Below are positions 27,727 to 64,000 of a stretch of 64,000 bases of DNA, piece by piece (positions within the stretch are counted from its first letter, which is position 1; each line of letters starts with the position of its first letter). The DNA is from Ascidiella aspersa. Its lineage: Eukaryota. The notes under the pieces were generated by a model. The model worked only from the letters and a program-made list of their open reading frames with translations. It had not been told where the DNA came from and made no database searches. The stretch lies in assembly GCA_963924565.1 (NCBI GenBank), contig OZ004608.1:37324001-37388000 (forward strand), written 5' to 3'. Position numbers and translations under genes: made by a program.

Positions 27727-30700
27727 ATGATTGGAATTGTCACGAAGATAGTTTTTGGGTTGATGTTGTTGACCACTGCTGCTTACGGGCGCCCTAAACA
27801 TGGTATGTTGCACTTTAAGTTGATGTAAAGCTGTTATTTAAACTTGTTTTAAAAAAACGTACATTGTTGTTTTTTTTACGATTTTATGAGTATATTTTTT
27901 TAATGTAAATTTTACTTAAAACGGTTATTGTACTGTTATTGAATAATATCCCAACAGTTATTGAATAATATCCCAACAGTACACAATTTTACCACTTAAG
28001 ATTTTTTCGATTAATTATGTTTAGAAGTGACGTTTTTTAATAAATACATTCAAGTTAGGCAAGTCAGCTTGACTTTGATGTTACGTTTGCAAAAATTAGC
28101 TAAACTTTAAAATGTTAAAAAGTCTTACAGAAAATACCCTTACTGCAAACCAATAAAATTTTTGGCCAAAATTAAATATTCTCAAATCCATATGTAGTTT
28201 AAAAAAATAGCTCCACAGAGTGTATCGCAGTAGCATCGTTTTAAAGTTAAAACAAAAGAAAAGTTGATGATTTTTTTTGATATCAGTGTTGCATGTTTTA
28301 TATAGTTTTTTATAAAAAACACAACACAAAATGTATATTGGTAATTTGATAATCATGCTTATTTAGTTTTGTTTAGTTTAATTTCAAATTAAAAATATAC
28401 ATTGATATTCAGATGATATTCAGAGTCTTACCTATTTATAGTTTTCAATTTTATTAAAAAATTATAAAAAATACTGATTTCAGAGTATTACTTATTCCGT
28501 TTTTTTTTCAGGTAAAAAAATCACAAAAGGTAAAAAATTACAAAATTCTTTTCAAAAATAAATTGAAAAAAACACAATATTTTTGTATTTTCAGATTGTA
28601 TTTTGGGAAACACTGAGCCGGCACCGAAGCCTCCTACACCAGAATGTAAGAATGGTGTTTGGACGAATTGGTACGATACCGACGATCCTTCGAACGGCTG
28701 GACATTCCAGGATAACTGCGACATTGAGAAGTTCAGTGTAATCCGGGACCTTCACCCCGAGATATGCGCCAACCCTTCAGCAGTTGATGTTCAGGTTGTG
28801 AATGGACCCCCGCACCAACTGGCTTGGAACATTGACATCTCTGTGAGCGAAGTCAAGTGCTGTCATGGCAGCAACATGATATCATCGACCGCTTGCCTTG
28901 TGTGCCATGACTATGAGGTCCGCTACTGTTGCCCTGCAAGTAAGTAAAACACTCTTTTGTTTGCCAGTAAGTTACTATTGCCCTGCAAGTAAGTAAAACA
29001 CTCTGTTGTCTGCCAGTAAGCTACTATTGCCCTGCAAGTAAGTAAAAAACACTGTTTTCTGCCAGTAAGCTACTAGTGCCCTGCAAGTAAGTAAAATCAA
29101 TATAAAATAGTATCTTATTTGGTCAATTGTATTTAGACCAGTGCTTCCCAACCAGTGAAAGCTATTCCAGGTGGGTCGCGAATCATTTCTAAATGTTACA
29201 GTTTTCTATCTGATTTATATTTTTGCATTATCATTACGTAACATACGTAACTACCTCATGTTTCGCATTAATAGCAAATTACCAGTTTTGTTATTATGTG
29301 AAATTTCACCATCAAAACTGTAATCGTTAGACAACGTTTGTGGCTTTAAGTTAATGTTTAATTTGATGTTTGGGAAAATATAACGTTATTTTAATTTATA
29401 AGCTTAATTATGCTAGACCAATGGTTCTCTACCTTGTTCTTTCGTGGCCCATTTACGTTTATTTTTTTGAAAGAAAAAGCTTTAAAATAGGTTTAGAACA
29501 AAACACAGCAGAACATATTTTAAACAGATTATTTATTCAACCGTGCATTAATTAGTGAAATACTTGCAGCTGAACAATAAATTTGCATTCCTTTATAATT
29601 CCTCCCCAAGCCATTATTCCTGCAAAATTCAATATAATGACACAAATAAAACTAAATCTAGCTTTTTTAAATTGGTCCGTGGCCAACCTCAAATGTTCTT
29701 ACGGCCCAGCAGTCAGCCATGGCCCACTGGTTGAGAAGGGCTGTGCTAGAACTTTCTACGTGGTATTGCCGAAAAGCATGGGCTACATCAAATCAATTCG
29801 GATATTTCAGTTAAGAGTAGTATTAGTATTAAATCCCATGTTGAAAGCAAATAAAGAGTTGTTCGAGACCTTCACAAAATGTTACCTATGATACTTCTGC
29901 ATGGGATTTGATATTTATTCTACGTCCAACTACATCTTCTAGCCATTATCTTAAGATTTATGCGAAACATTCAAATTGCTACCCACATTATGTATGGGCT
30001 GTTATATTTTTTCTACGTCCAACTACAACTTCTAGCCATTATCTTCAGATTTACTCGAAACGTTCAAAATGCTAGATACTTCTGTATGGGATTTGATATT
30101 CATTCTACTTCCAACTACAACCTCCAGCCATTATCTAAAGATTTATTAAAAACCTTCACAAAATGACACCTACTTCTGTATTTGCTTTGATATTTATTCT
30201 ACGTCCAACTACAACTTCCCGCAATTATCTTAAGATTTATGCGAAACATTCAAATTGCTACCCACATTATGTATGGGCTGTTATATTTATTCTACGTCCA
30301 ACTACAACCTCTAGGCATTATATTAGGATTTATTCAAAACGTTCAAAATGCTAGATACTTCTGTATGGGATTTGATATTCATTCTACGTCTAACTACAAC
30401 CTCCAGCCATTATCTTAAGATTTATTCGAAACATTTTAAATGCTACCTATACTCTGTATGGGCTAAATATTCCTACTCACCCTTGTTTCTTCGTTACAGC
30501 CGTCGGTAAATGTGAGGTTGGAACTCAATACTCTTCCGTTAACTGGGGTCCGTGGTGGAACGTTGACACCCCAAACACTAATGGAGACGACCTGGAAGTG
30601 GTTACTAACAATATGCTTGGAGGAAAAATACCAGTTTGCGCTAATCGAATCGCCATCGAGGCGCGTGTGGTATTAACCAACTTGCCTTATGCGTCCGGGG

Positions 30701-30852
30701 GTGATATTCTTACTTTCGTGAGCGCTGCTAATGGTTTAAAGTGTCCCTTGGGGGGAACAGAGTGCAAGGATTACAAGGTCCGCTTCTGCTGCGCCAAGAA
30801 AAGGACAACTGTGGGTGTGAGCCAGCACATGTTTCAACACGAGAGGCAATAA
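27727..30852 (+). CDS. Secreted protein with two WxxW (mucin CysD / CILP-type) domains, about 257 aa. Exons 27727-27802, 28595-28939, 30500-30852
   Basis: Signal peptide MIGIVTKIVFGLMLLTTAAYG. Domain 1 WTNWYDTDDP...C.DYEVRYCC; domain 2 WGPWWNVDTP..NGDDLE...CKDYKVRFCC. Phase-1 introns; spliced length 774 nt, open. Confidence 0.9.
28923..29097 (+). repeat. 49-bp tandem repeat x3.5 spanning the exon 2 donor of the WxxW gene
   Basis: CTACTRTTGCCCTGCAA|GTAAGTAAAA occurs four times. Confidence 0.92.
29419..29743. mobile_element. Charlie-like hAT MITE in intron 2 of the WxxW gene
   Basis: Ends CAATGGTTCTCTACC...GGTTGAGAAGGGCTG. TSD TGCTAGAC/TGCTAGAA. Confidence 0.8.
29860..30470. repeat. About 92-bp minisatellite x6.5 with ABC-ABC higher-order structure
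   Basis: TGTATGGG..TGATATT.ATTCTACGTCCAACTACAAC recurs at about 29897, 29991, 30082, 30177, 30270, 30361, 30454. Confidence 0.9.
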
Positions 30853-42094: not shown

Positions 42095-42355
42095 TTCACA
42101 TTTTAATGGTATCGGAATGGTACCCGTGGGTGCCATGTGAAAAGTTGAGCCGGGCAACGTTCATTCCACACTTGATCATATTCTGCAGAACTTTGACTTT
42201 GTTCGAGTGGGCCAATCGTGCAAATAATTGATGTATTGCGGCATGTGATCGGTTCAGAGTCGATGGCCAATGAACAAGCGTGTTCCAGCAAAAGTCAATG
42301 CAGTGACTGGCCTGGAACTTTGGAATTGGTAAAATGCATCGTCGCTTTGTGCCAT
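42095..42355 (-). pseudogene. Pyruvate kinase N-terminal fragment, frameshifted and intron-free
   Basis: [28 protein letters not shown], then after a frameshift [35 protein letters not shown] (pyruvate kinase signature IICTIGP...[12 protein letters not shown]). No further PK sequence recognised. Confidence 0.9.
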
Positions 42356-43936
42356 GCTGATAAATTTAATTGAAGTAATACTTTAAAAGTTTTGATCTAA
42401 TTTGTACTAAGATCTCTCTTATTCAAATAGAACACAGTTTCACAATTTGTATGTGCTGCTAGGTTTATTTAGTAGGTAGGTATAACAGGTAAATGTTTAA
42501 ACCTTTTGTTTGTGGTGGAGGTGGTACAATTTTGACAGCTCGTTTTGTTGCTTTAAATAAAAGTGGTAGGATTCTAGATCAACGCCCTTTTTTCACAAGA
42601 CCATTGTTATTTATAAGTTTAATCACTTTTACATCATAATTTCAATAAACACTTTATTATATAATTGCTATTCACAAATACCGCCGACGATTTTAATAAC
42701 GGTGTCAACAACGAAAATTACCCGGAAATTAATAACACAATGAAGCTCTAATTGTATTTTACTACAAGGTATTTATATTTGGGAAAACACAATAAGACAA
42801 AGCAACAAAACCTAAAGCAGAACAATTTATAAAACCATAGTAATAAAACCAACGACATAATAAAGCCAAACACGCATATTACTGTCCTATACAGAACAAG
42901 ATCAAAATCGTACCCGAATAAGGCCTAAATGGCCAAAATAACGCCTCTGGCGCCGCTTGTTTTGGCACCGGATTTTTGGTCCTGTTTGAGGTTATTGTAG
43001 GTTAATTAGTGGGTTAGAAAGTGGTTTAGGGTTGAAATTATTACGGGAGTTAGAAAAATTCTTAGGGGTTTGGGGTTAGGTAAAGTGTTGTTTAGATCTG
43101 ATTCTTACCATTTAGCTCTTATCCAGACGGATTTATTTATTTATTTCGATTTAAACGTTTTTACGACTAGTATTAGTCCTATTTTGGCCTTATTCCGAAC
43201 TGTGTTTTAATCTAAAGAAAATGTTGAAAATTTTTGCGTTTACGTATAGTTAAGGTTGGCCAAAAATATAGTTCGACAGGTACTCAGGACCACATTTGGC
43301 ACGTGGGCCAGAACCACGCTGGGACAATATAAAAGTTCTAAACCACATGTACTTTTAAAACAAAGTGCAATAAATGTACGGCTATCATGCGGCTCACAAC
43401 TACATGATAACACTAAGCTATTCAAAAGTAACTTGCGGCCCACTAAAAATGGCTCTGCGGCCCACAGTTTGCCGACCACTGTTTTAAAAGAAAAAAAAAA
43501 AATATTTTTTTAAACTCCAATTTAAAATGTGTTTTGTGTGGGTGCACTATGCACGGACCTGTAAATTCATTATCACGCTAAAACAAGTTTACCATCGTAT
43601 TTTAGTAAAATGTATACACGGAATACATTTGAGGTCAGAAATTTATTCGTAAACTAAACCATCACAAATACAGTGCAATATAAATTAGAAACATGCTTAA
43701 ACAAGCGATCAATTGGACGAAACTAGTAAAAGGCGAAAGCGTTAGAGGTCTACTGTTATATAAAAGTGGAAAACAATTATTTTGTTTAAATTAATTGGAC
43801 AATTTCACTTGGTAAATTTTACAAAATTACAGCGGAAAATTTAAGTATACCCAAAATTTTTGGCGTTTGATTTTTTACAAATAGTTTTTAGAGGATTTTT
43901 AGTTTGCGAATTACCGGGAATTAGAAATATACACAA

Positions 43937-44818: not shown

Positions 44819-47800
44819 TTATTGGTTGGCCTCGTCATCATCGTCGTCGTTTCGGTCCCACGTGATCTTGAGGTGCGTCACAATGGCTTGCGTCATGCCT
44901 TCAATGGTGCGTGACCGCTCGTCCAATCCGGCGAGGGCACGCCTGACTGACTTCACGCGCCCGGAGAGAACATCAAGCTGCGATTCCATTTCTTCGAGTT
45001 TCGACTAAAAAAGATGAAGGTTTTGCCAAATTTGAAGAATTTCGACTAAAAAAGATGAATGTTTTGCCTAATTTGAAGAATTTCGGCTGAAAAGATGAAT
45101 ATTTTGCCAAATTAAAAAAAAAATTCGACTAAAAATGTGAGTGTTTTGCCTAATTTAAAGAATTTCGACTGAAAACATGACTGCATCGCCTAATTTACAC
45201 AATTTCGACTGAAAAACATTATAATTTTGCCTAATTTGAGAAATTTCGGCTGAAAAAATGAATATTTTGCCAAATTAAAAAAAATTCGACTAAAAATATG
45301 AGTGTTTTGCCTAATTTAAAGAATTTCGACTGAAAACATGACTGCATCGCCTAATTTACACAATTTCGACTGAAAAACATTATAATTTTGCCTAATTTGA
45401 GAAATTTCGGCTGAAAAGATGAATATTTTGCCAAATTAAAAAAAAATTCGACTAAAAATATGAGTGTTTTGCCTAATTTAAAGAATTTCGTTTAAAAAAG
45501 ATAAATATTTTGCCTAATTTGAAGAACTTCGGCTGAAACGAAAAATAAAAATCGACTGGAAATATAAGTGTTTCGTCTAAGTCAAAAATTTCGACTTAAA
45601 AAGTGGATGTTTCGCCTGATTAAAAAAAAGAAAAAAAAGGAACTTTATCACGAAAAGTGGAGGTGGTATCTTGTTTATTGTTTATAATTGTTACTATAAA
45701 CAATGGATCCTGTGACACTTTGCTGTGTTAATTGATTGTTGTTAACTGTAATTTCCCTTAATTGTATTTTATGTGTCATTTACTTTTATGTCATGCTTGA
45801 CTGATTCTTATGCATGGCTAATTTTATATGCATGAGTGACTTTATATGCATGAGTGATTTTGTACATGTGGCACTGTGCCAGCATGCTTGCCATTTATGT
45901 TAGTGCTGTCCTAATGTCATTTAGTTGGTGCTGTAGTTGTGTTATCAAGTGTTAGCCTTTGTTGTATGTTCCTACTTATATTTCTTTTAGCTCATCATTA
46001 ACTATATGGATTCATTCGAATTAAGGATGCTTCATGTTAATAATAATAAGTTACTTGTTGTTAAATTATATAACTCTGTGCACTTGTGTGCAACAAGATT
46101 CTTCTCCCCATTGGTGGTTGCTTGAAGATAAGTTTACAGAACACTTTAACCCTAACCCTTACCTTCTCTGGGTCCAAAGCCTCGTTAATCGTGTTGTGGT
46201 TGAGGTTCTCCTCGGAGTACAACCACTGGACAAGTCGCGATCTCTTGCGGTGCTTGTTGGGCGAGAAACTTCGGTATTTCTTCATAAATCTTCGGCGAAT
46301 GAACTGGGGGAGCGTGTATTCGACGTCTAATGTCAGCTGGACCTGGGTGTAAGAATGGTTGGCGTTTAAATCTCTATGTGTGTGTGATAGTGCAATGGCT
46401 GTAAACCGAGGGTCTGCCGTTTTTTACGATACTTTGTGATGAAATATGATATTTTTTTTATGAAATATGATATTTTAGATAAAATGTGATACTGTTGTTA
46501 AAATAAAACATGCCATTTTTTTAATGAAACAAAATATTTTTTAAAACAATATGATATTTTTGATGAAATATGATATTTTTCTAAGGAGTGTAAAAAAAAA
46601 TAAAGTAAACAAACCTGCATCCCCAAACTTTCAAGTTCGGCGTTATCCTGGACAGCTTTGATGTCATCAACAGCCAAACCGACCTACATAATGTACATAA
46701 TGTAAACAATGTACACAGTTAAGATATTTAGGTTGCATATACAATTTACAGAGTTAAGCAGGTGGCGTCTTTAGGGCTTTATTATTTCAAGTTGCGTGTA
46801 TTGTGTAAACGAGTAATTATTAACTATATGTATTAAACCGAACAAGGTTATGTTCATAACAATTTATATAGAAAAAATAGTTTAAATTATCAACAGCTAA
46901 ACCGACCTACACAATGTACAGAGTTAAAAGATCTTAAAGGGACTTGAGGTTTATTGGCACAAGTTCCATTAATATTTTTTATTTACTTTTCATATAACAC
47001 GTAGTCATTTCGATAAACTCAATAAGGATAATCTCATAATTATTTGAATAAAAAAGAGCTCCAATAAATAGTAATTTTGTTATAATTTGCTTAGCGGCAA
47101 CTTATACGCAGTGAAACAACATTCCAAAAATATAAAGCTGAATTGTTTTGTTTGAGCCTGCTTCTTTACGGTCAGTAAACACGTATTAGATACAACAAAA
47201 ATACGTACAATGTTGAACTACCAATATGTGTTGACTGTTAAAAAAATCAATTTGACGTATTAACTCACGAGCAAGTTCATGATGATGATGCTCATGAGAA
47301 TCATGAAGATCACGAAAACGATGTACGTCACAGCTCTGTAGTTCACCTGTGAAAGGAAACGGACAGAATTTTTTTTAGAAAAATAAAATAGGCCAAATAA
47401 TGATCAGTTTTTAGCAACAAAAACTTATCAATAATATCCATTCTTTTTTTTTAAACTATTTATTTTCACTCACCAATACCATAAGTTTTTATAAAGATAT
47501 GTCGGAAATTCACTTTTATTGGATATAATAGTTTTGTTACAGAAATAGAATAATAATTAGAAAAAAATAGAATAAAGTCAGATATAGTTAAAAGAAAGAA
47601 ACAGTATACGGCAATGATTCCAAGCCAGGTACCCTTTCAAGCTTATTTACTCCCCAATTTTTAAGACTGACCTGACAAACAACCTTGCATGGAAATAACC
47701 AGGGCTATGTAATCTATTATTCACAACTTACAGCCGACACGAGCAGAGTGTGAGCATCAGCTCCGGTTTCCTGAGCTTCGACCTCAGCGTTGAAAATTCC

Positions 47801-56800: not shown

Positions 56801-59800
56801 GATAGAAAGCGTTAGATGTGTCCTATGCGGGTTACACCACCTTTTTCTAAACCGCTGTTTTAAATCTCCCTTTTCTGAACACATATTTTTCGATCCTTCT
56901 CTTCATAAAAAGCTAAAGTACCTTCTTTGCATCAGCTGAACTTATTTCTGGCACTTTTAAACAATAAAATAACGTTCTGCATATTGGGCTTAACGTATAT
57001 AAAAAGGTAGTTCGACTTTTTGTACTATACATTCTAGTACCTGTTACTGAGCTTACACGTTGCTACGATCTGATAAGACTGATGCTTGCTAAATCTTTCC
57101 ATACTTTTCGACTTTCGAGCACTGCCGAGCTGCAAAAACATATTCACAGCATTTAAATACTTATAAAGCAATACCTAATATCTTAGGCAAACAACTTAAG
57201 TCATTGTTAAACGTGCAACTACAACTGTGCTATATGTAAAGTATCCGTCTTAATCTTACTGCTCGGCGTAACAGGAGGCTTATTTAGCTATACAATAGCT
57301 ACAGTCTTATCAAATATTAAAAAATATATCCTTTTCACAATATTTATTATGCCAGTCCTTTTTACGAAAAAACCTAAACCTAAGATGTCCAATAAGCTAA
57401 ATTTTATCCAGAAATACCAAAATTAATTTAACTAATCAGTAAACTAAGTTAAATAACCCCATATTTCGGGGGAAGCACCCACCTGGCCCCAATATTAACT
57501 CTGATATTACGAGAACATTAGTTTTACAAAATCACAACCTTACTTAGCTGCTCAACGTGCATTTTTTTTTCTAGAAAACACCAAAATAATCAATAACTAT
57601 TCTAGTTAACCCAAACTTTAAACTAAATTAGCCAAAAAAAATAAAAGTTTAACTCCATATGTTTGGAGAAGCACCTACCTGGCCCCGATGTTAGCCCCTA
57701 GTCTGACCAGCTCCCTGACCACGTGGGTCCTCCCACAAAGTGCGGCAAGATGAAGTGGAGTGTTGGCGTTCTCATCATCATCATGTACGATCTCGTGTTT
57801 CCTAGCAACAAGCGCTTGTACAATCTTCAACCTCCCGTTGTCGGCCGCAAGATGAAGAGGAGTTTGCTCATCTTCGTTCTTAGAATCGATCTCCGCTCCA
57901 GCGTCCAACAGGATCTGAGATGTTAAAGGGGAGGGTGACACTTGGTCGCTAGCTTTGTAGTGTTTTGCGAGTGTTTGTTTAGGGAGGACACCGTATTTTA
58001 AGAGCTTTTCTCAGAACTACTACAAAGATGGGTAAAGATGCAAATTTTACTTTTTCGTTTTTAAATCAGCTTTTAAATGCTACACGGAAAACGAAAAAAA
58101 ATTAAAAGCTAAGAAAATATTCAGAAAACCCCGACTGAGCGTTGATTTCTAAAAGCTTGTTATACATAGTTGATTGGTCATTTCTCAAACTCTTTGAATA
58201 CATGGCGGAAACATTAAGTGCAAGCAGCCATTCCCACTCGTGCTGGTTGGACATTGTTGGCAAATATATTTTGTTTTATGTTTAGGTTTGGAACGCCGAA
58301 GATAAAACTTGTAGTGAGCTTAACTGACACATACCAATAAACACCAAATCGTATTTAAATATTCTATTATTGCTGTAGTAATACACTTATAGTTCAAAAT
58401 AACATTGTTGAAATTTTTTGGTTGAAACCAACATTTTCTTTAATTTAAGCAAATAAGAATAAACAATACTTTAAGTGTTTTTCCACGAAACTTTCAACCG
58501 ACTCACTTTTACGACGTTGAAGTGTCCCTTCTCCGCAGCGACATGTAGCGGCGTGTTGTCGTAACGATCGGTCAGTTCCAATAACCCGTTTCTCACTTTC
58601 TTGCTCTTTAGTAGGAGCTGAGAAGAAAACAACACATTAGGAGCGACATATCGCAGGTGGGGTAAATATAAAAGAGGAAGTACCGCACGACAATTATAAT
58701 AATATCGGTTATAAGCTTAGTACGTGTTTTCACAACAGAATATTTCCCTTCAACAAACCACATCATGCCGACGACAAAAGTTTTAAAATTTTATAATAGC
58801 TTGAGAAGCTCACCGCGTCGAACAACAATCAGTCAGCAAGGTCTAAAGCTTTTAATGTATAAAATGAATTTTTGTAGAAGCAAATAAATAGTAAAAAAAT
58901 TAAAATAATAAAATGTAAAATAAATAAATAAATAAATAAAAATACATCCAAGACTAACATGGACACAGACAACTTTTCGGTTATGAATTACTTATTTAGG
59001 TTGAATGCTTGAGTAAGGTATTATATATGCTTTCAAAACAAGGTGTAGCTAAAAGTTGAATTTGATTATATTTATGCAGGGCAACGCTTCTAGTACCTAA
59101 TACGAACAACCTGCACATCTCCTAAATTATCTTCAGTTAAATTACAAGCAAAATGGCCTTGGGTGAGGTTTGAACCCAGAACATATTCCGAGACCGTCGC
59201 TCTACACACTGAGCTACACAGGCTCAGAGGGGAGACAGTCGAGAAACAACCATAGCACCGTTGCCTGCTGCATACTGTTTGTAAAACTAGGCTGTGGTGA
59301 GGTTAGAACTTACGACCTCGGCCATACCGGGAACGTCGCTCTACCAACCGAGCTACACAGGATCAGAGGGAGTGAGTTGAAAAACAATCATAGCACCGCT
59401 GCCTGCTGCATCCTGTTCGTAAAACTAGCCTGTGGTGAGGTTCGAACTCACAACCACCGGTTTACCAAAGTTTTATATGTAAACAACGAAAGATTAAAAT
59501 GCAGACTGCGCTGGGATTCGAATCCGTGACCATATTTCGGCCAACGAACCTGTAGAGCGTCAGGTCTGTCTTCCTCAGCGCACTGATACAACACCGTCTT
59601 GTCGTTCTTGTCAGTTGCTGTGACGTTTGCTTTGTGCTTAAGGAGGATCTCTATCGCCTCCGTGTGGCCGTAGTTGGCGGCGATCAACAGCGCCGTAAAG
59701 TGGTCGGCGTCGTGAAGCTCAATCTTTGCTCCGCTGTGAGAAAACATAAGATGTAAGACAACATTTATCAACCATAAAAACATGTTGAGGTGGACCACAG

Positions 59801-62789
59801 ACAAAAAAAATAGATTTATTGAAGAATTTAGTTTCAGTTGTGTCTCTATACTTAATTTTTAGGAATAATTCCTTAGGGAGAAATTGAGAAGGAATGTAAA
59901 TAAAAATGAAATGTAAATTTATTGTTCAGCCCCAAGTATCTCACTAATGCACGGTTGAATAAATATTCTGTTTTGAAATATGTTCGGCTGTTTTTGTTGT
60001 ATACCTATCATAAAGTTTTTTTTGTTCTTTCATAAAGTTTGTTGAACCGCATGACTTTTTCGCAACGATCATGGGCAACAAAAGAAAAAAGTTAGAACCA
60101 CTGATTTAAGATAGGGGGGTACTTAAGCGGATAAGCTCATATTGAAATGTGGCATGTGTGTAAAGTATGGTAGGGTTAACAAGTTTAAAATATAATTTCG
60201 ATGTCAATTAAGGATATTAAGCTCGATATGAGTGTTAGGTTGGTAAATGTTATCCAGGGGTGGCCAACCACTCAGATACCAAGAGCGGCATTAGTTACTT
60301 GGTTAACCGCTAAGAGCCACACCTTACACACATGGAACGAAAATAATAGCCTATCACTCAATTTCTTACTCATAACAACAAAGCCATCGCAAAAAGCGCG
60401 AAAGAGAGCCTTTGTTTCGTTAAAAAGACAAAATTGGAACTTAGCCTACAAGGAGATACGACGCATTAAATGAGAAAATACACATTTCTCGATATAATGT
60501 GATTTATCAATATTATTTGGGCATATTGTTTGCGTTTAACTTGTTTCAAAAGTGTTTGGCAGGCAAAAAGTCTGAGTCGAAACCATCAATAATCCATAAC
60601 TTAACCTAACGAAATCGAGTCACTCTAATCTAATATCATATGTGCAACACGAAGGAGCCGCATATAACTCGGTGAAGAGCCGCATGCGGCTCGCGAGCCA
60701 CGTGTTGGCAACCCATGTTATATACCGTTAAAAAGTTTCTTAAAGTTAAAGGAGGCGTTTACAGCCTAATCTATTTAGAACTAAAAAGCATTGGCCCTAA
60801 CGGCTCGAACTATTCTGAACTTAAATTTTATCTCCAACTCGGCAATGGTGTTGCTCAGGATAGCCATTTGTCATATACATCATAAACACCAAACTTATGA
60901 GTTGGAAAAAATGCAAAAACATATAAATCACAAAAACACAAAAAACACCACAAACGCTATAAATATACGGAAGGAAAGTTATCTGTTTGTTTAGTAGATC
61001 TAATATCGCCAATATGTATAAAAATACAATGCTACCAATAACTACAAGAGTTTAATCAGGAGCACTAATACGTTATCTGTTGTAAAAATTGACAAGAAAC
61101 TAAAGATCATAAAAAATTATCAGCAGTTAAAAATAGACTGTGCAAAAATAAAAATAAAATCAGCCAACACGAACAATACAAAATCACGAGCTTTGCGAGA
61201 AGAATCTAAACGTATTTTTATCTTTTCTTCCTTTATAATAATTAGGTCAATTGAGGCAAAGCAAAAAAAATAAATAAAACTTATAATGTAAGTGCTAGTA
61301 AAACAAATAGCAAAAAAATCTCGAACCTCGTGAGTAGAAACTCGACCACCTTGAAGTGGTTGAATTGTGACGCAAGAATGAGCGGGGTTGACAACGATTC
61401 GTCCCGCTCGTTGACCTTTGCCCCCTTGGCCACTAGGAGGCGGGCGATCTCAAGGTGACCGTGACGGGCGGCCAGGTGAAGGGGGGTTTCGCGGTTCGAT
61501 CGGAAAGAATTGAGGGCGGCCGGGTAATCTGGAAATTTTCATGTTTTTTTTAATTTCTGTGTTTAGGTTTGAATTTTTATCACTTTTCGCCATTTTTTTT
61601 GGATCAAAATCTGTTTTCTTTGCGTGAATATCTGTTTAAAAAAAAATTGAGCTTTCAGATTACACAAAAAATAAAATATTTTATTAGTTTTATGAAAACT
61701 AAACAGCTCAATTAAATGACAAAACATTAAGAAAAAACAGATTTAAAAAAAATACTAAAAAAAGTAAAAAATGCATCGTAAAATCGGTGAAAAGTTGTTT
61801 AGCATTATCCGGCGTTAGATACTTTAACAAAACCTTATACTTTTCGTTAACCAATTATTTCTTAAAAAGTTATTAAAACTCACTATTTGCGAGGCAGGCT
61901 TCGACGATGTGCTCGGTGACCTTGAGATGACCGTTGTCGACCGCCAGGTGCAAGGGGGAATTCCCATCGTTGTCCTTCTCATCAAGGATATCCAGGAACC
62001 GAACGTTGTGTCGCTTCTTGTAGTTGTCAAGCATAAGCTTCACGATCTGAGCACAAAGAATATGTGTTGTTTATATGAAAATCTGGAAAAAATCAATACA
62101 CAGTCTGAAAAAAAATAATGAAAAATCGGAAAAAAAATCTTAACTGTAAAAAAAAATGATTAAAATTTTATTTAAAATCCAAAAAAATAAATAGATTAAA
62201 ATAAAAAACTTATTCAAACCGTGAAAAATAAATGGATTTCAACTTTTAAATAAAAATTAAATTTCAAATCTGAAAAAAAATTAAAATGTAAAAAAAAAAC
62301 TGTGAAACAAAAAGGATTTGAACTCTACATAAAATTTAATTTAAAATCTGAAAAAAAAAAATTGCATTTCAACTGAGGAACTTTCTATTAATTACACTAA
62401 AGTTTAACGATCTGTGGGTACACAAATAATGTATGTTGATTAAAAGGAAAAGTGGTAAAAACATTGGTTGTGCGAAAAATTATCATATTGCTGTTTTCTA
62501 GAGACTGAAACCAGTTAGAACCTTAAGGCACACAAAGGACTACTTTAAACCTACTCCAGACCGTTAAAAAAGCTCCTCCAACAAGCAAACATTTACTTGA
62601 TTGGATTAATTTATAATTATCGCTACTCACTTCTAAGTTTCCTTCTGCTGCTGCAAACTGAAGAGGCGTCCCATTGTCGTCATCCTGGCATCTGATCTCG
62701 GCTCCTTGCTCAATCAAGATCTTCGCAACATCAACTCTTCCATAGACCGCTGCTATGTGCAGGGGGGTCATCTGTTGTCTGTCACGAGC
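44819..62789 (-). CDS. TRPA1: TRPA1-like ankyrin-repeat TRP channel, 5'-partial (about 1013 aa in window). Exons 62789-62631, 62046-61884, 61528-61327, 59733-59550, 58617-58507, 57914-57679, 56215-56042, 55767-55616, 54860-54742, 54214-54104, 53194-53159, 52243-52151, 51802-51631, 50345-50206, 49780-49646, 48919-48719, 47872-47732, 47346-47269, 46683-46615, 46342-46163, 45004-44819
   Basis: More than 10 TPLH-type ankyrin repeats, LLRHPLV..LL..KW, six TM segments, pore MMIGEFEF, S6 IMNLLVGLAVDDI and a C-terminal coiled-coil-like helix. All junctions are GT-AG and phase-compatible (3042 nt). The 36-nt exon is the least certain. Confidence 0.93.
45001..45620 (-). repeat. About 40-bp tandem repeat x16 (161-bp higher-order unit) beginning at the acceptor of the last TRPA1 exon
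   Basis: TTTCGACTAAAA/TTTCGGCTGAAA at 45001, 45042, 45083, 45125, 45165, 45205, 45246, 45286, 45326, 45366, 45407, 45448... Confidence 0.92.
47923..47994. repeat. Perfect 72-bp inverted repeat (35-bp arms, 2-nt loop)
   Basis: AATTAGTATTTTTTTAGAAAGCGATTCCCGATATT-AA-AATATCGGGAATCGCTTTCTAAAAAAATACTAATT. Confidence 0.95.
53427..53483 (-). repeat. Truncated tRNA-derived repeat
   Basis: CTGTGGTGAGATTCGAACTCACGACCTCGG matches the units at 59.3 kb. Confidence 0.65.
59160..59455 (-). repeat. Tandem tRNA-derived repeat, 138-bp unit x about 2.2, in a TRPA1 intron
   Basis: Minus strand TAGCTCGGTTGGTAGAGCG (A box) ... GTTCTAACC/GTTCGAACC (B box). Units start at 59292 and 59430; no convincing anticodon stem. 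Confidence 0.8.
60255..60717. mobile_element. Charlie-like hAT MITE in a TRPA1 intron
   Basis: CAGGGGTGGCCAAC...GTTGGCAACCCATG with GAGCCGCATGCGGCTC subterminal motif; TSD degraded. Confidence 0.7.
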
Positions 62790-63550
62790 CTACAGAGATG
62801 TGAAATAGTAGTGATTATGTGGGGGTCATCTGCTGCCTGTCACGAGCCTAAAGAGATGTGAAATAGTAGTGATTAAATTGGGGTCATCTGCTGCCTGTCA
62901 CGAGCCTAAAGAGATGTGAAATAGTAGTGATTAAATGGGGGTCATCTGCTGCCTGTCACGAGCCTAAAGAGATGTGAAATAGTAGTGATTAAATGGGGAT
63001 CATCTGTTGCCTGCCACGAGCCTAAAGAGATGTGAAAAGTAGTGATTAAATGGGGGTCATCTGCTGCCTGTCACGAGCCTAAAGAGATGTGAAATAGTAG
63101 TGATTAAATGGGGGTCATCTGTTGTCTGTCACGAGCCTACAGAGATGTGTAATAGTAGTGATTAAATGGGGGTCATCTGTTGTCTGTCACGAGCCTACAG
63201 AGATGAGAAATTGTAGTGTTTAAATGGGGGCCATCTGTTGTCTGTCACGAGCCTACAGAGATGTGAAATAGTAGTGATTAAATGGGGGTCATCTGTTGTC
63301 TGTCACGAGCCTACAGAGATGTGAAATAGTAGTGATTAAATGGGGGTCATCTGTTGTCTGTCACGAGCCTACAGAGATGTGAAATAGTAGTGATTAAATG
63401 GGGGTCATCTGTTGTCTGTCACGAGCCTACAGAGATGTGAAATAGTAGTGATTAAATGGGGGTCATCTGTTGTCTGTCACGAGCCTACGGGGATGTCAAA
63501 TTGTATCGATTAAATGGGGTCATCTGCTGTCTGTGACGAGCCTAGAGGGA
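62763..63550 (-). repeat. 58-bp minisatellite x14 (degenerate copies continue to about 63850) spanning a TRPA1 splice acceptor
   Basis: TCATCTG repeats at 62768, 62826, 62884, 62942, 63000, 63057, 63115, 63173, 63231, 63289, 63347, 63405, 63463, 63520. Confidence 0.95.
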
Positions 63551-64000
63551 TGTAAAACAATGTTGATTAGTTGGAAAATTGTTACAGGCCTACTGAGGTG
63601 TCAAATAATAGTGATTAGGAGTAGGGTATGTGACGGGTCTGCCAGGAAGCGAAATAGTAGCGATTAAAGCCACGCCTCACCGAGCTGTCAAATAGTAGCG
63701 ATTGAATGAAAGATTTGCCACAAATTCACTTGTGGATGCCAAAAAAATAGCGATTAGGTGGATGAATTGTCACACACGGGTGTTTATTAGTTGCGCTCAA
63801 GGGTAGGAATTGTCGCGGGCCACAAAGATGTACAATGGCGGTAATAAGGTGTAGTTTTCTATATTTTGCCGTCTTTAAAGTGTAATTTGTCAGGTCATGC
63901 GTAGTTCTGGAAATCGACTAAGTTTAATAATATTGTGGCTGTCGTAAGTTATATTACCTCAAAAAATGGACCGATAATAGTCCGCCTGTAGAGCCGAGAG

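Follow-up and report, generated by a model that had tools for sequence, protein, structure and literature searches.

The 64,000-nucleotide (nt) window analysed here (contig OZ004608.1, positions 37,324,001 to 37,388,000, forward strand) carries on its minus strand a gene that runs from about 68100, outside the window, to 44820 and that homology identifies as encoding a TRPA1-family cation channel. One intron of this gene ends in a tandem array in which its own acceptor and the first codons of the following ankyrin-repeat exon are repeated, and 13 decoy acceptors precede the authentic one. Homology searches were run exon by exon. Ankyrin Pfam matches (Ank, Ank_2, Ank_4) were found in at least five exon segments, and tblastn gave collinear alignments with homologues of 1244-1282 amino acids (aa). 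All nine PDB matches of the S4-S5 exon were TRPA1 chains, human and other, with E about 1e-12, and S6 gave a weak Ion_trans Pfam match. The closest full-length relatives (1244-1282 aa) carry the NCBI name 'TRPA1 homolog'; a protein entry from the species itself was not found. Pfam, PDB, tblastn and the names of these relatives thus support, at the level of the family, the TRPA1 assignment made in an earlier note on this DNA.

The features of the array and its surroundings are listed below in window coordinates, where X1 and X2 are two DNA data sets of the same organism and u01-u13 are the decoy units.

62631 to 62789, minus strand: authentic ankyrin-repeat exon of 53 aa, phase 0 at both ends (Pfam, homologue alignment)
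62790 to 62820, minus strand: intron portion of the authentic (last) unit; its AG acceptor is at 62791-62790 (unit alignment, sequence)
62821 to 63572, minus strand: 13 decoy units, u01-u13, each with a pyrimidine tract, TAG and 27 exon-like nt (repeat finding, motif scan, alignment)
62822 to 63515, minus strand: 694 nt (u02-u13, 12 units) missing from the allele of sample X2 (X2 contig)
63573 to 63760, minus strand: decayed units, in both samples (repeat-family search, core motif)
63761 to 64000, minus strand: remainder of the 1329-nt intron, to the window edge (upstream flank sequence, homologues)

The exon at 62789-62631 gave a Pfam Ank/Ank_4 match (E=3.6e-16) and is followed by a GTGAGT donor at 62630. 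The preceding ankyrin exon ends in phase 0 at 64119 and is followed by GTATAA; on L008, a reference sequence that extends past the window, this exon end is L008:2119 and the donor GT is at L008:2118-2117. The intron between this exon end and the exon start at 62789 is therefore 1329 nt long. Homologue P0005 aligned without the loss of a residue over the junction, its residues 207-256 to 64268-64119 and its residues 257-310 to 62789-62628, and homologue P0004 behaved alike. The spacing from TALH to TPLH over the junction was 34 residues, as expected of consecutive ankyrin repeats, and the junction region keeps the ankyrin periodicity of roughly 33 residues. In two related genomes (L010 and L011), whose exons are 72-77% identical in protein, an intron was found at the same position and in the same phase. 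The homologue alignment, the ankyrin spacing and the related genomes together place the exon start at 62789, so that the array is wholly noncoding and the acceptor named in the earlier note was the correct one. An acceptor within the exon, at the AG after ...cacatag, was also considered and rejected, since it is out of frame with the phase-0 donor and would lose the ankyrin TPLH core.

Fourteen head-to-tail units of 57-58 nt each fill 63572-62763 on the minus strand. Tandem Repeats Finder (TRF) reported 62763-63557 with a period of 58, 13.7 copies, 94% matches, no indels and a score of 1331. Each unit consists of 31 nt of intron 3' end and 27 nt of exon start, the latter corresponding to nine codons (ARDRQQMTP). 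The 31 intronic nt hold a branch-point-like TTAAT motif, a short pyrimidine run and TAG, with TTAAT lying 26 nt upstream of the AG of each unit. A motif scan found 14 TAG/GCTCGT sites (the slash marks the splice site) at intervals of 57-58 nt; the exon-like parts start at 63541, 63484 and so on to 62847 and 62789. When the 14 units were aligned, the 3' splice-site core was invariant and the mean column identity was 95%. A 15-nt core motif occurred 19 times in the window, compared to 1.6 times expected, and 17 of these occurrences fell within 62803-63756 on the minus strand. Upstream of the array, at least four older, decayed units could be traced to about 63760; they are spaced 38-52 nt apart, several still end in AG, and the core motif matched in them at 63617, 63666, 63704 and 63756.

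The units fall into two subtypes. Units u02-u08 and the authentic unit are of the A-type (...ctgtag followed by AGA CAA), while u09-u13 form a block of the B-type (...ctttag followed by AGG CAG), in which unit 10 is mixed. The B-type is distinguished from the A-type by a T in place of G at -4 and by two A-to-G changes, which are synonymous in the exon frame. Units u03-u05 were identical to one another, and u01 and u02 were the most diverged of the array. Reading in the exon frame showed that all 13 upstream copies run into a stop after 9-18 residues, most of them as ARDRQQMTPI-stop, and that the sole copy continuing into the 53-aa ankyrin exon is the one at 62789.

These results bear out most of what the earlier note had read from the same letters. 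The 13 extra acceptor copies were recovered by the repeat finder, the motif scan and the alignment. The description of the unit as an acceptor plus the first nine codons agrees with the motif scan and with the exon start fixed by homologues, which also leaves the last copy as the only one to yield the ankyrin repeat. The reading of the 13 copies in the exon frame confirmed the premature stops expected after splicing to an upstream copy, and the 14-unit alignment the two subtypes in blocks. Two claims needed adjustment. The note had let the decayed units trail to about 63850; such units exist, but the core motif follows them only to about 63760. It had also pointed to frameshifts, 58 not being a multiple of 3, which is correct but beside the point, since every copy reaches a stop first.

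The whole 308-Mb genome was searched with three units, and no match was found outside the array itself. The unit is thus unique in the genome and the array is neither a transposon nor a dispersed satellite; such an origin was likewise excluded for the two further junction-spanning arrays of the window described below, as the units of all three arrays matched their own loci only. In the two related genomes the corresponding intron was 527 and 1165 nt long, with a single acceptor and no tandem repeat. The absence of the array from both relatives shows that it is lineage-specific and was derived from the junction itself, and the decayed relics show that array formation began long ago. A search of L008:1-3000 against Rfam gave no match at E up to 1.

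Contigs of X1 and X2 were mapped to L008:300-2500, and gaps in the depth table were not taken as evidence. The X1 contigs break inside the array, and one 87-nt array piece had a depth of 305, compared to about 55 in the flanks. In X2, the exon and the authentic unit are covered by one 785-nt contig of even depth, similar to that of the flanks, in which L008:821 is joined directly to L008:1516. The 694 nt missing between them correspond exactly to u02-u13 (57+57+10x58). A de Bruijn contig could not have crossed this region unbroken if X2 had contained more units identical to the authentic one. The number of decoys is thus polymorphic, with 13 in one haplotype and 1, plus relics, in the other, the X2 allele being read from the contig. 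The array accordingly has an old component (the relics and u01), present in both haplotypes, and a young, unstable component of 12 units, present in one. With about 635 nt in the short form and 1329 nt in the long one, the locus illustrates that copying of its own boundary can more than double an intron, which bears on models of intron growth and of intron gain by duplication. The recent, staged expansion claimed earlier is supported by the identity of u03-u05, by the block structure and by the second sample without the 12 units.

About 3-5% of intronic positions in X2 depart from the reference, and the exon has three differences (at 62667, 62679 and 62757), all synonymous. The intact open exons, and exon changes that are all synonymous next to the short allele, indicate a gene under constraint and a dispensable array. 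The divergence suggests that the species is very polymorphic or that its name covers a cryptic lineage. One relic unit in X2 has 19 extra nt that restore its missing exon-like part, which confirms the relics as old copies of the 58-nt unit. Because the old-looking u02 is missing in X2, there is a hint that the short allele arose by contraction through unequal exchange instead of being ancestral.

In unit size, in a unit that spans the junction, in length polymorphism between haplotypes and in local origin, the structure fits a mirage-type minisatellite. The array therefore belongs to a class already described in amphioxus and in a few human genes, a point that the earlier note had missed. The original report of the Adh3 mirage is said to be that of Canestro et al. 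(2002) in NAR (Nucleic Acids Research). In amphioxus, mirages were first described in Adh3 and later in globins (BflGb6, BflGb9), TnC, retinol dehydrogenase and PGBD5, and they vary in length without disturbing splicing (PMC3087553, PMC3902484). For Adh3 of amphioxus, somatic instability has also been reported. The unit of BflGb6 consists of an intron 3' end and the 5' part of an exon, its haplotypes have 6 and 3 units, and reverse transcription PCR (RT-PCR) indicates normal splicing (PMC3087553). The TRPA1 array shares with the amphioxus mirages that the units span an exon/intron boundary, on the acceptor or donor side there and, as in BflGb6, on the acceptor side here; that many units keep their AG or GT; that copy number differs by haplotype (6 and 3 units in BflGb6, 13 and 1 decoys here); that central units are homogenised while edge units are older; and that several genes per genome are affected. 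It differs in having a 58-nt unit, compared to 150-160 bp in BflGb6 and 10-72 bp in Adh3, and in having more copies. Normal splicing was seen by RT-PCR in amphioxus, whereas for the TRPA1 array it is presumed.

Among human genes, F7 has in intron 7 a polymorphic minisatellite of 37 bp that begins with a unit across the exon-intron boundary, and its pseudo-donors are functional but silent, since site selection was shown to follow 5'-to-3' scanning; LMNB2 and PDGF behave like F7, while IFI6 (6-16) and CBS intron 13 use the two nearest pseudo-sites (PMC1557585). As in this group, the end unit of a polymorphic minisatellite spans a splice junction at TRPA1, the pseudo-sites are identical, and the exon-proximal copy alone gives the correct mRNA. 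In contrast to this group, in which a 5' splice site is repeated, the TRPA1 array repeats a 3' splice site, and our literature search turned up no experiments on a 3' splice site repeated in this way. Tandem acceptors such as NAGNAG (PMC2699507, PMC2018619) also have neighbouring 3' splice sites that compete for one exon, but with a spacing of 3-12 nt, a common branch point and mostly in-frame variants as products. At TRPA1 the spacing is 58 nt, every site comes with a branch-point-like motif and a tract of its own, and all of them lead to stops. The array also resembles decoy exons, which favour intron retention (PMC6097662, PMC7373989), in that nonproductive intronic splice sites could engage the machinery; decoy exons differ in being single cryptic exons with a 3' and a 5' site, whereas the TRPA1 units are without a usable donor after the exon-like part.

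Two further arrays in the window, which the earlier note had likewise missed, span a splice junction:

44999 to 45594, minus strand: second acceptor-side array of the same TRPA1 gene, with units of about 40 nt and 16 acceptor-like sites (TRF, sequence, site list)
28922 to 29096, plus strand: donor-side array of a Mucin2_WxxW gene, with a 49-nt unit and four ...CCTGCAA/GTAAGT sites (TRF, sequence, Pfam, site list)

In the acceptor-side array each site has a pyrimidine run and YAG followed by TCGAA or CCGAA, and the array shows a higher-order repeat of 161 nt (95%). The final coding exon, which encodes a C-terminal coiled-coil, begins at 45004 with the last of these sites, and homology agrees with this start within one codon. 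In the donor-side array the unit repeats the last 18 nt of the Mucin2_WxxW exon and a perfect GTAAGT donor. The first site is the authentic donor (exon end 28939, intron from 28940), the Pfam WxxW match ends at the exon end, and the later donor copies would give an in-frame TAA. This 49-nt array is the direct counterpart of the human F7 intron 7 minisatellite. The units of both arrays had no matches elsewhere in the genome and are thus locus-specific. The occurrence of two more boundary arrays within the same 64 kb, in two genes and on both the acceptor and the donor side, argues for a general mutational process rather than a device specific to TRPA1.

Three other arrays in the window were merely intronic. 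In a survey of 282 kb, 10 arrays qualified and 3 of them spanned a junction; the other 7 had no Pfam-supported exon at their ends. An annotation-free comparison of array ends with the ends of long stop-free segments was powerless, as random placements scored 62%. For two of three gene arrays hitting a junction we obtained a rough P of about 0.03, a post hoc value that depends on our own count of about 50 junctions in 24 kb. The recurrence suggested by these data is that of three cases in a single window rather than a genome-wide statistic. A far-reaching extension is that boundary minisatellites are frequent genome-wide, and that the 13-versus-1 polymorphism either alters productive mRNA through decoy use and nonsense-mediated decay (NMD) or, with silent decoys, reveals a strict 'last acceptor before exon body' rule; we consider this extension to have only a small chance of being right.

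How the array arose and how it is spliced can be put together as follows. A tandem duplication would have spanned the intron 3' end and 27 nt at the start of the ankyrin exon that follows, and the duplication would then have grown and shrunk by slippage or unequal exchange. By geometry, a readable mRNA could come only from the copy contiguous with the exon, and the other copies are intronic. The spliceosome would normally take the last acceptor. NMD is triggered when many exon junctions follow a stop at a distance of more than 50 nt, and transcripts spliced to a decoy, which carry an early stop, may be removed in this way. By analogy with the known mirages, the array is probably a tolerated by-product with largely silent decoys, neutral or slightly harmful, and not a regulatory device; we infer both the lack of function and which acceptor is used.

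Several points weigh against a silent by-product. The authentic unit differs from the consensus decoy only at -30/-29, and from -28 to +27 the A-type decoys and the authentic site do not differ. The pyrimidine tract of the B-type decoys is even cleaner, as G is replaced by T at -4, and the TTAAT of the decoys is closer to the branch-point consensus than the ATAAT of the authentic unit. The intrinsic strength of the sites therefore cannot explain an exclusive use of the last copy, whose sole distinction is that the rest of the exon and a donor follow it. The nearest decoys would define exons of 217-333 nt, which is a normal exon size, and the proximal pseudo-sites of human IFI6 and CBS are in fact used (PMC1557585). 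The silence of the decoys is assumed by analogy, and the short X2 allele was read from a short-read contig. Masking of the decoys by RNA structure was considered and rejected, as 291 nt over the last units folded worse than shuffled sequences (z = +2.33).

If the decoys did compete with the true acceptor, as the earlier note proposed, a share of transcripts that depends on array length would be spliced to a decoy and degraded, and the length of the array would tune TRPA1 dosage. All 13 decoys keep the pyrimidine tract, the AG and the 27 exon nt, with a strength at least equal to that of the authentic site, each leads to an early stop that lies far ahead of over 20 exon junctions, and the 13 and 1 copies in the two samples would provide variation for selection. 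The use of proximal pseudo-sites in IFI6 and CBS gives a partial precedent (PMC1557585), and tandem repeats tied to splicing variation are common in humans (PMC10078293). However, normal splicing is documented for the amphioxus mirages and for the minisatellites of F7, LMNB2 and PDGF (PMC3087553, PMC3902484, PMC1557585), similar arrays are found at unrelated junctions nearby, and the absence of the array in two relatives, together with its near absence in one conspecific haplotype, argues against a conserved regulator. We regard such tuning of dosage as unlikely. The array could also act as a splicing enhancer or landing pad in which the copies of the branch point and tract concentrate U2AF, SF1 and U2 and hasten the use of the last acceptor. 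Every unit does have a TTAAT 26 nt upstream of its AG and a pyrimidine run, and the repeat number in F7 intron 7 is reportedly associated with the level of factor VII. This proposal is pure inference, the short allele and both relatives manage without the array, and the units show no sign of selection, so that an enhancer role appears very improbable.

A stepwise, recursive rescue was also weighed, in which splicing to a decoy would rebuild a weak GC-type donor (GAG/GCTCGT) that is then re-spliced, so that each step removes 58 nt and the last one arrives at the true exon. Six of the 9 donor consensus positions are matched by the rebuilt junction, +1, +5 and +6 among them, but a GC donor mismatched at +3 and +4 is very weak, and we found no precedent in the mirage literature; we give this route scarcely any weight. 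It would be just as surprising if the array were an artefact, a repeat over-expanded in the long-read assembly. Tandem arrays can be mis-sized in assemblies, and the size given here rests on the assembly and on short-read contigs, with no spanning read. Against this, the X1 contigs break in the array and one piece has about 5.5x the flank depth, which fits several near-identical copies, the unit variants are ordered and block-wise, and the deletion in X2 is in exact unit register.

How the spliceosome chooses among identical sites is an open question, for which F7 has served as a 5' splice-site model. The TRPA1 locus offers the matching model for the 3' splice site, with thirteen decoys that are the same as the real site over at least 55 nt and that have their own branch-point-like motifs. 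The species also has a natural short allele with a single decoy, and the three synonymous single-nucleotide differences in the exon can tag the alleles in heterozygotes, which makes the 13-versus-1 polymorphism a useful natural experiment. Should the decoys be fully silent, a strict last-acceptor rule would be the 3'-side mirror of the 5'-to-3' scanning in F7. If the host is not a cephalochordate, the finding would add a new animal group to those with mirages. The results show nothing special about TRPA1 biology itself.

Other features were found near the arrays. Just downstream of the TRPA1 donor, at L008:2052-2099 (window 64052-64099), lies a core of about 45 nt (...CTACTTCTGYATGGGCTTT...) with a short-read depth of about 27,000-85,000, compared to 55-90 for single-copy sequence, which identifies it as a very abundant dispersed repeat. 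The same element also forms a 93-nt tandem array at 29892-30464, upstream of a WxxW exon. At 59188-59455, two tandem 138-nt copies adjoin an ankyrin exon; their translated motifs recall tRNA-derived short interspersed nuclear elements, which we take to be a candidate assignment only. Downstream of TRPA1 and on the same, minus strand, 42099-42365 is a pyruvate kinase barrel-domain exon (Pfam PK, E=1e-9) that marks the next gene. The WxxW-domain exons at 28567-28939 and 30500-30814, both on the plus strand, are about 1.6 kb apart and are separated by an intron crowded with minisatellites, and the pair suggests a mucin-like gene with repeated WxxW modules.

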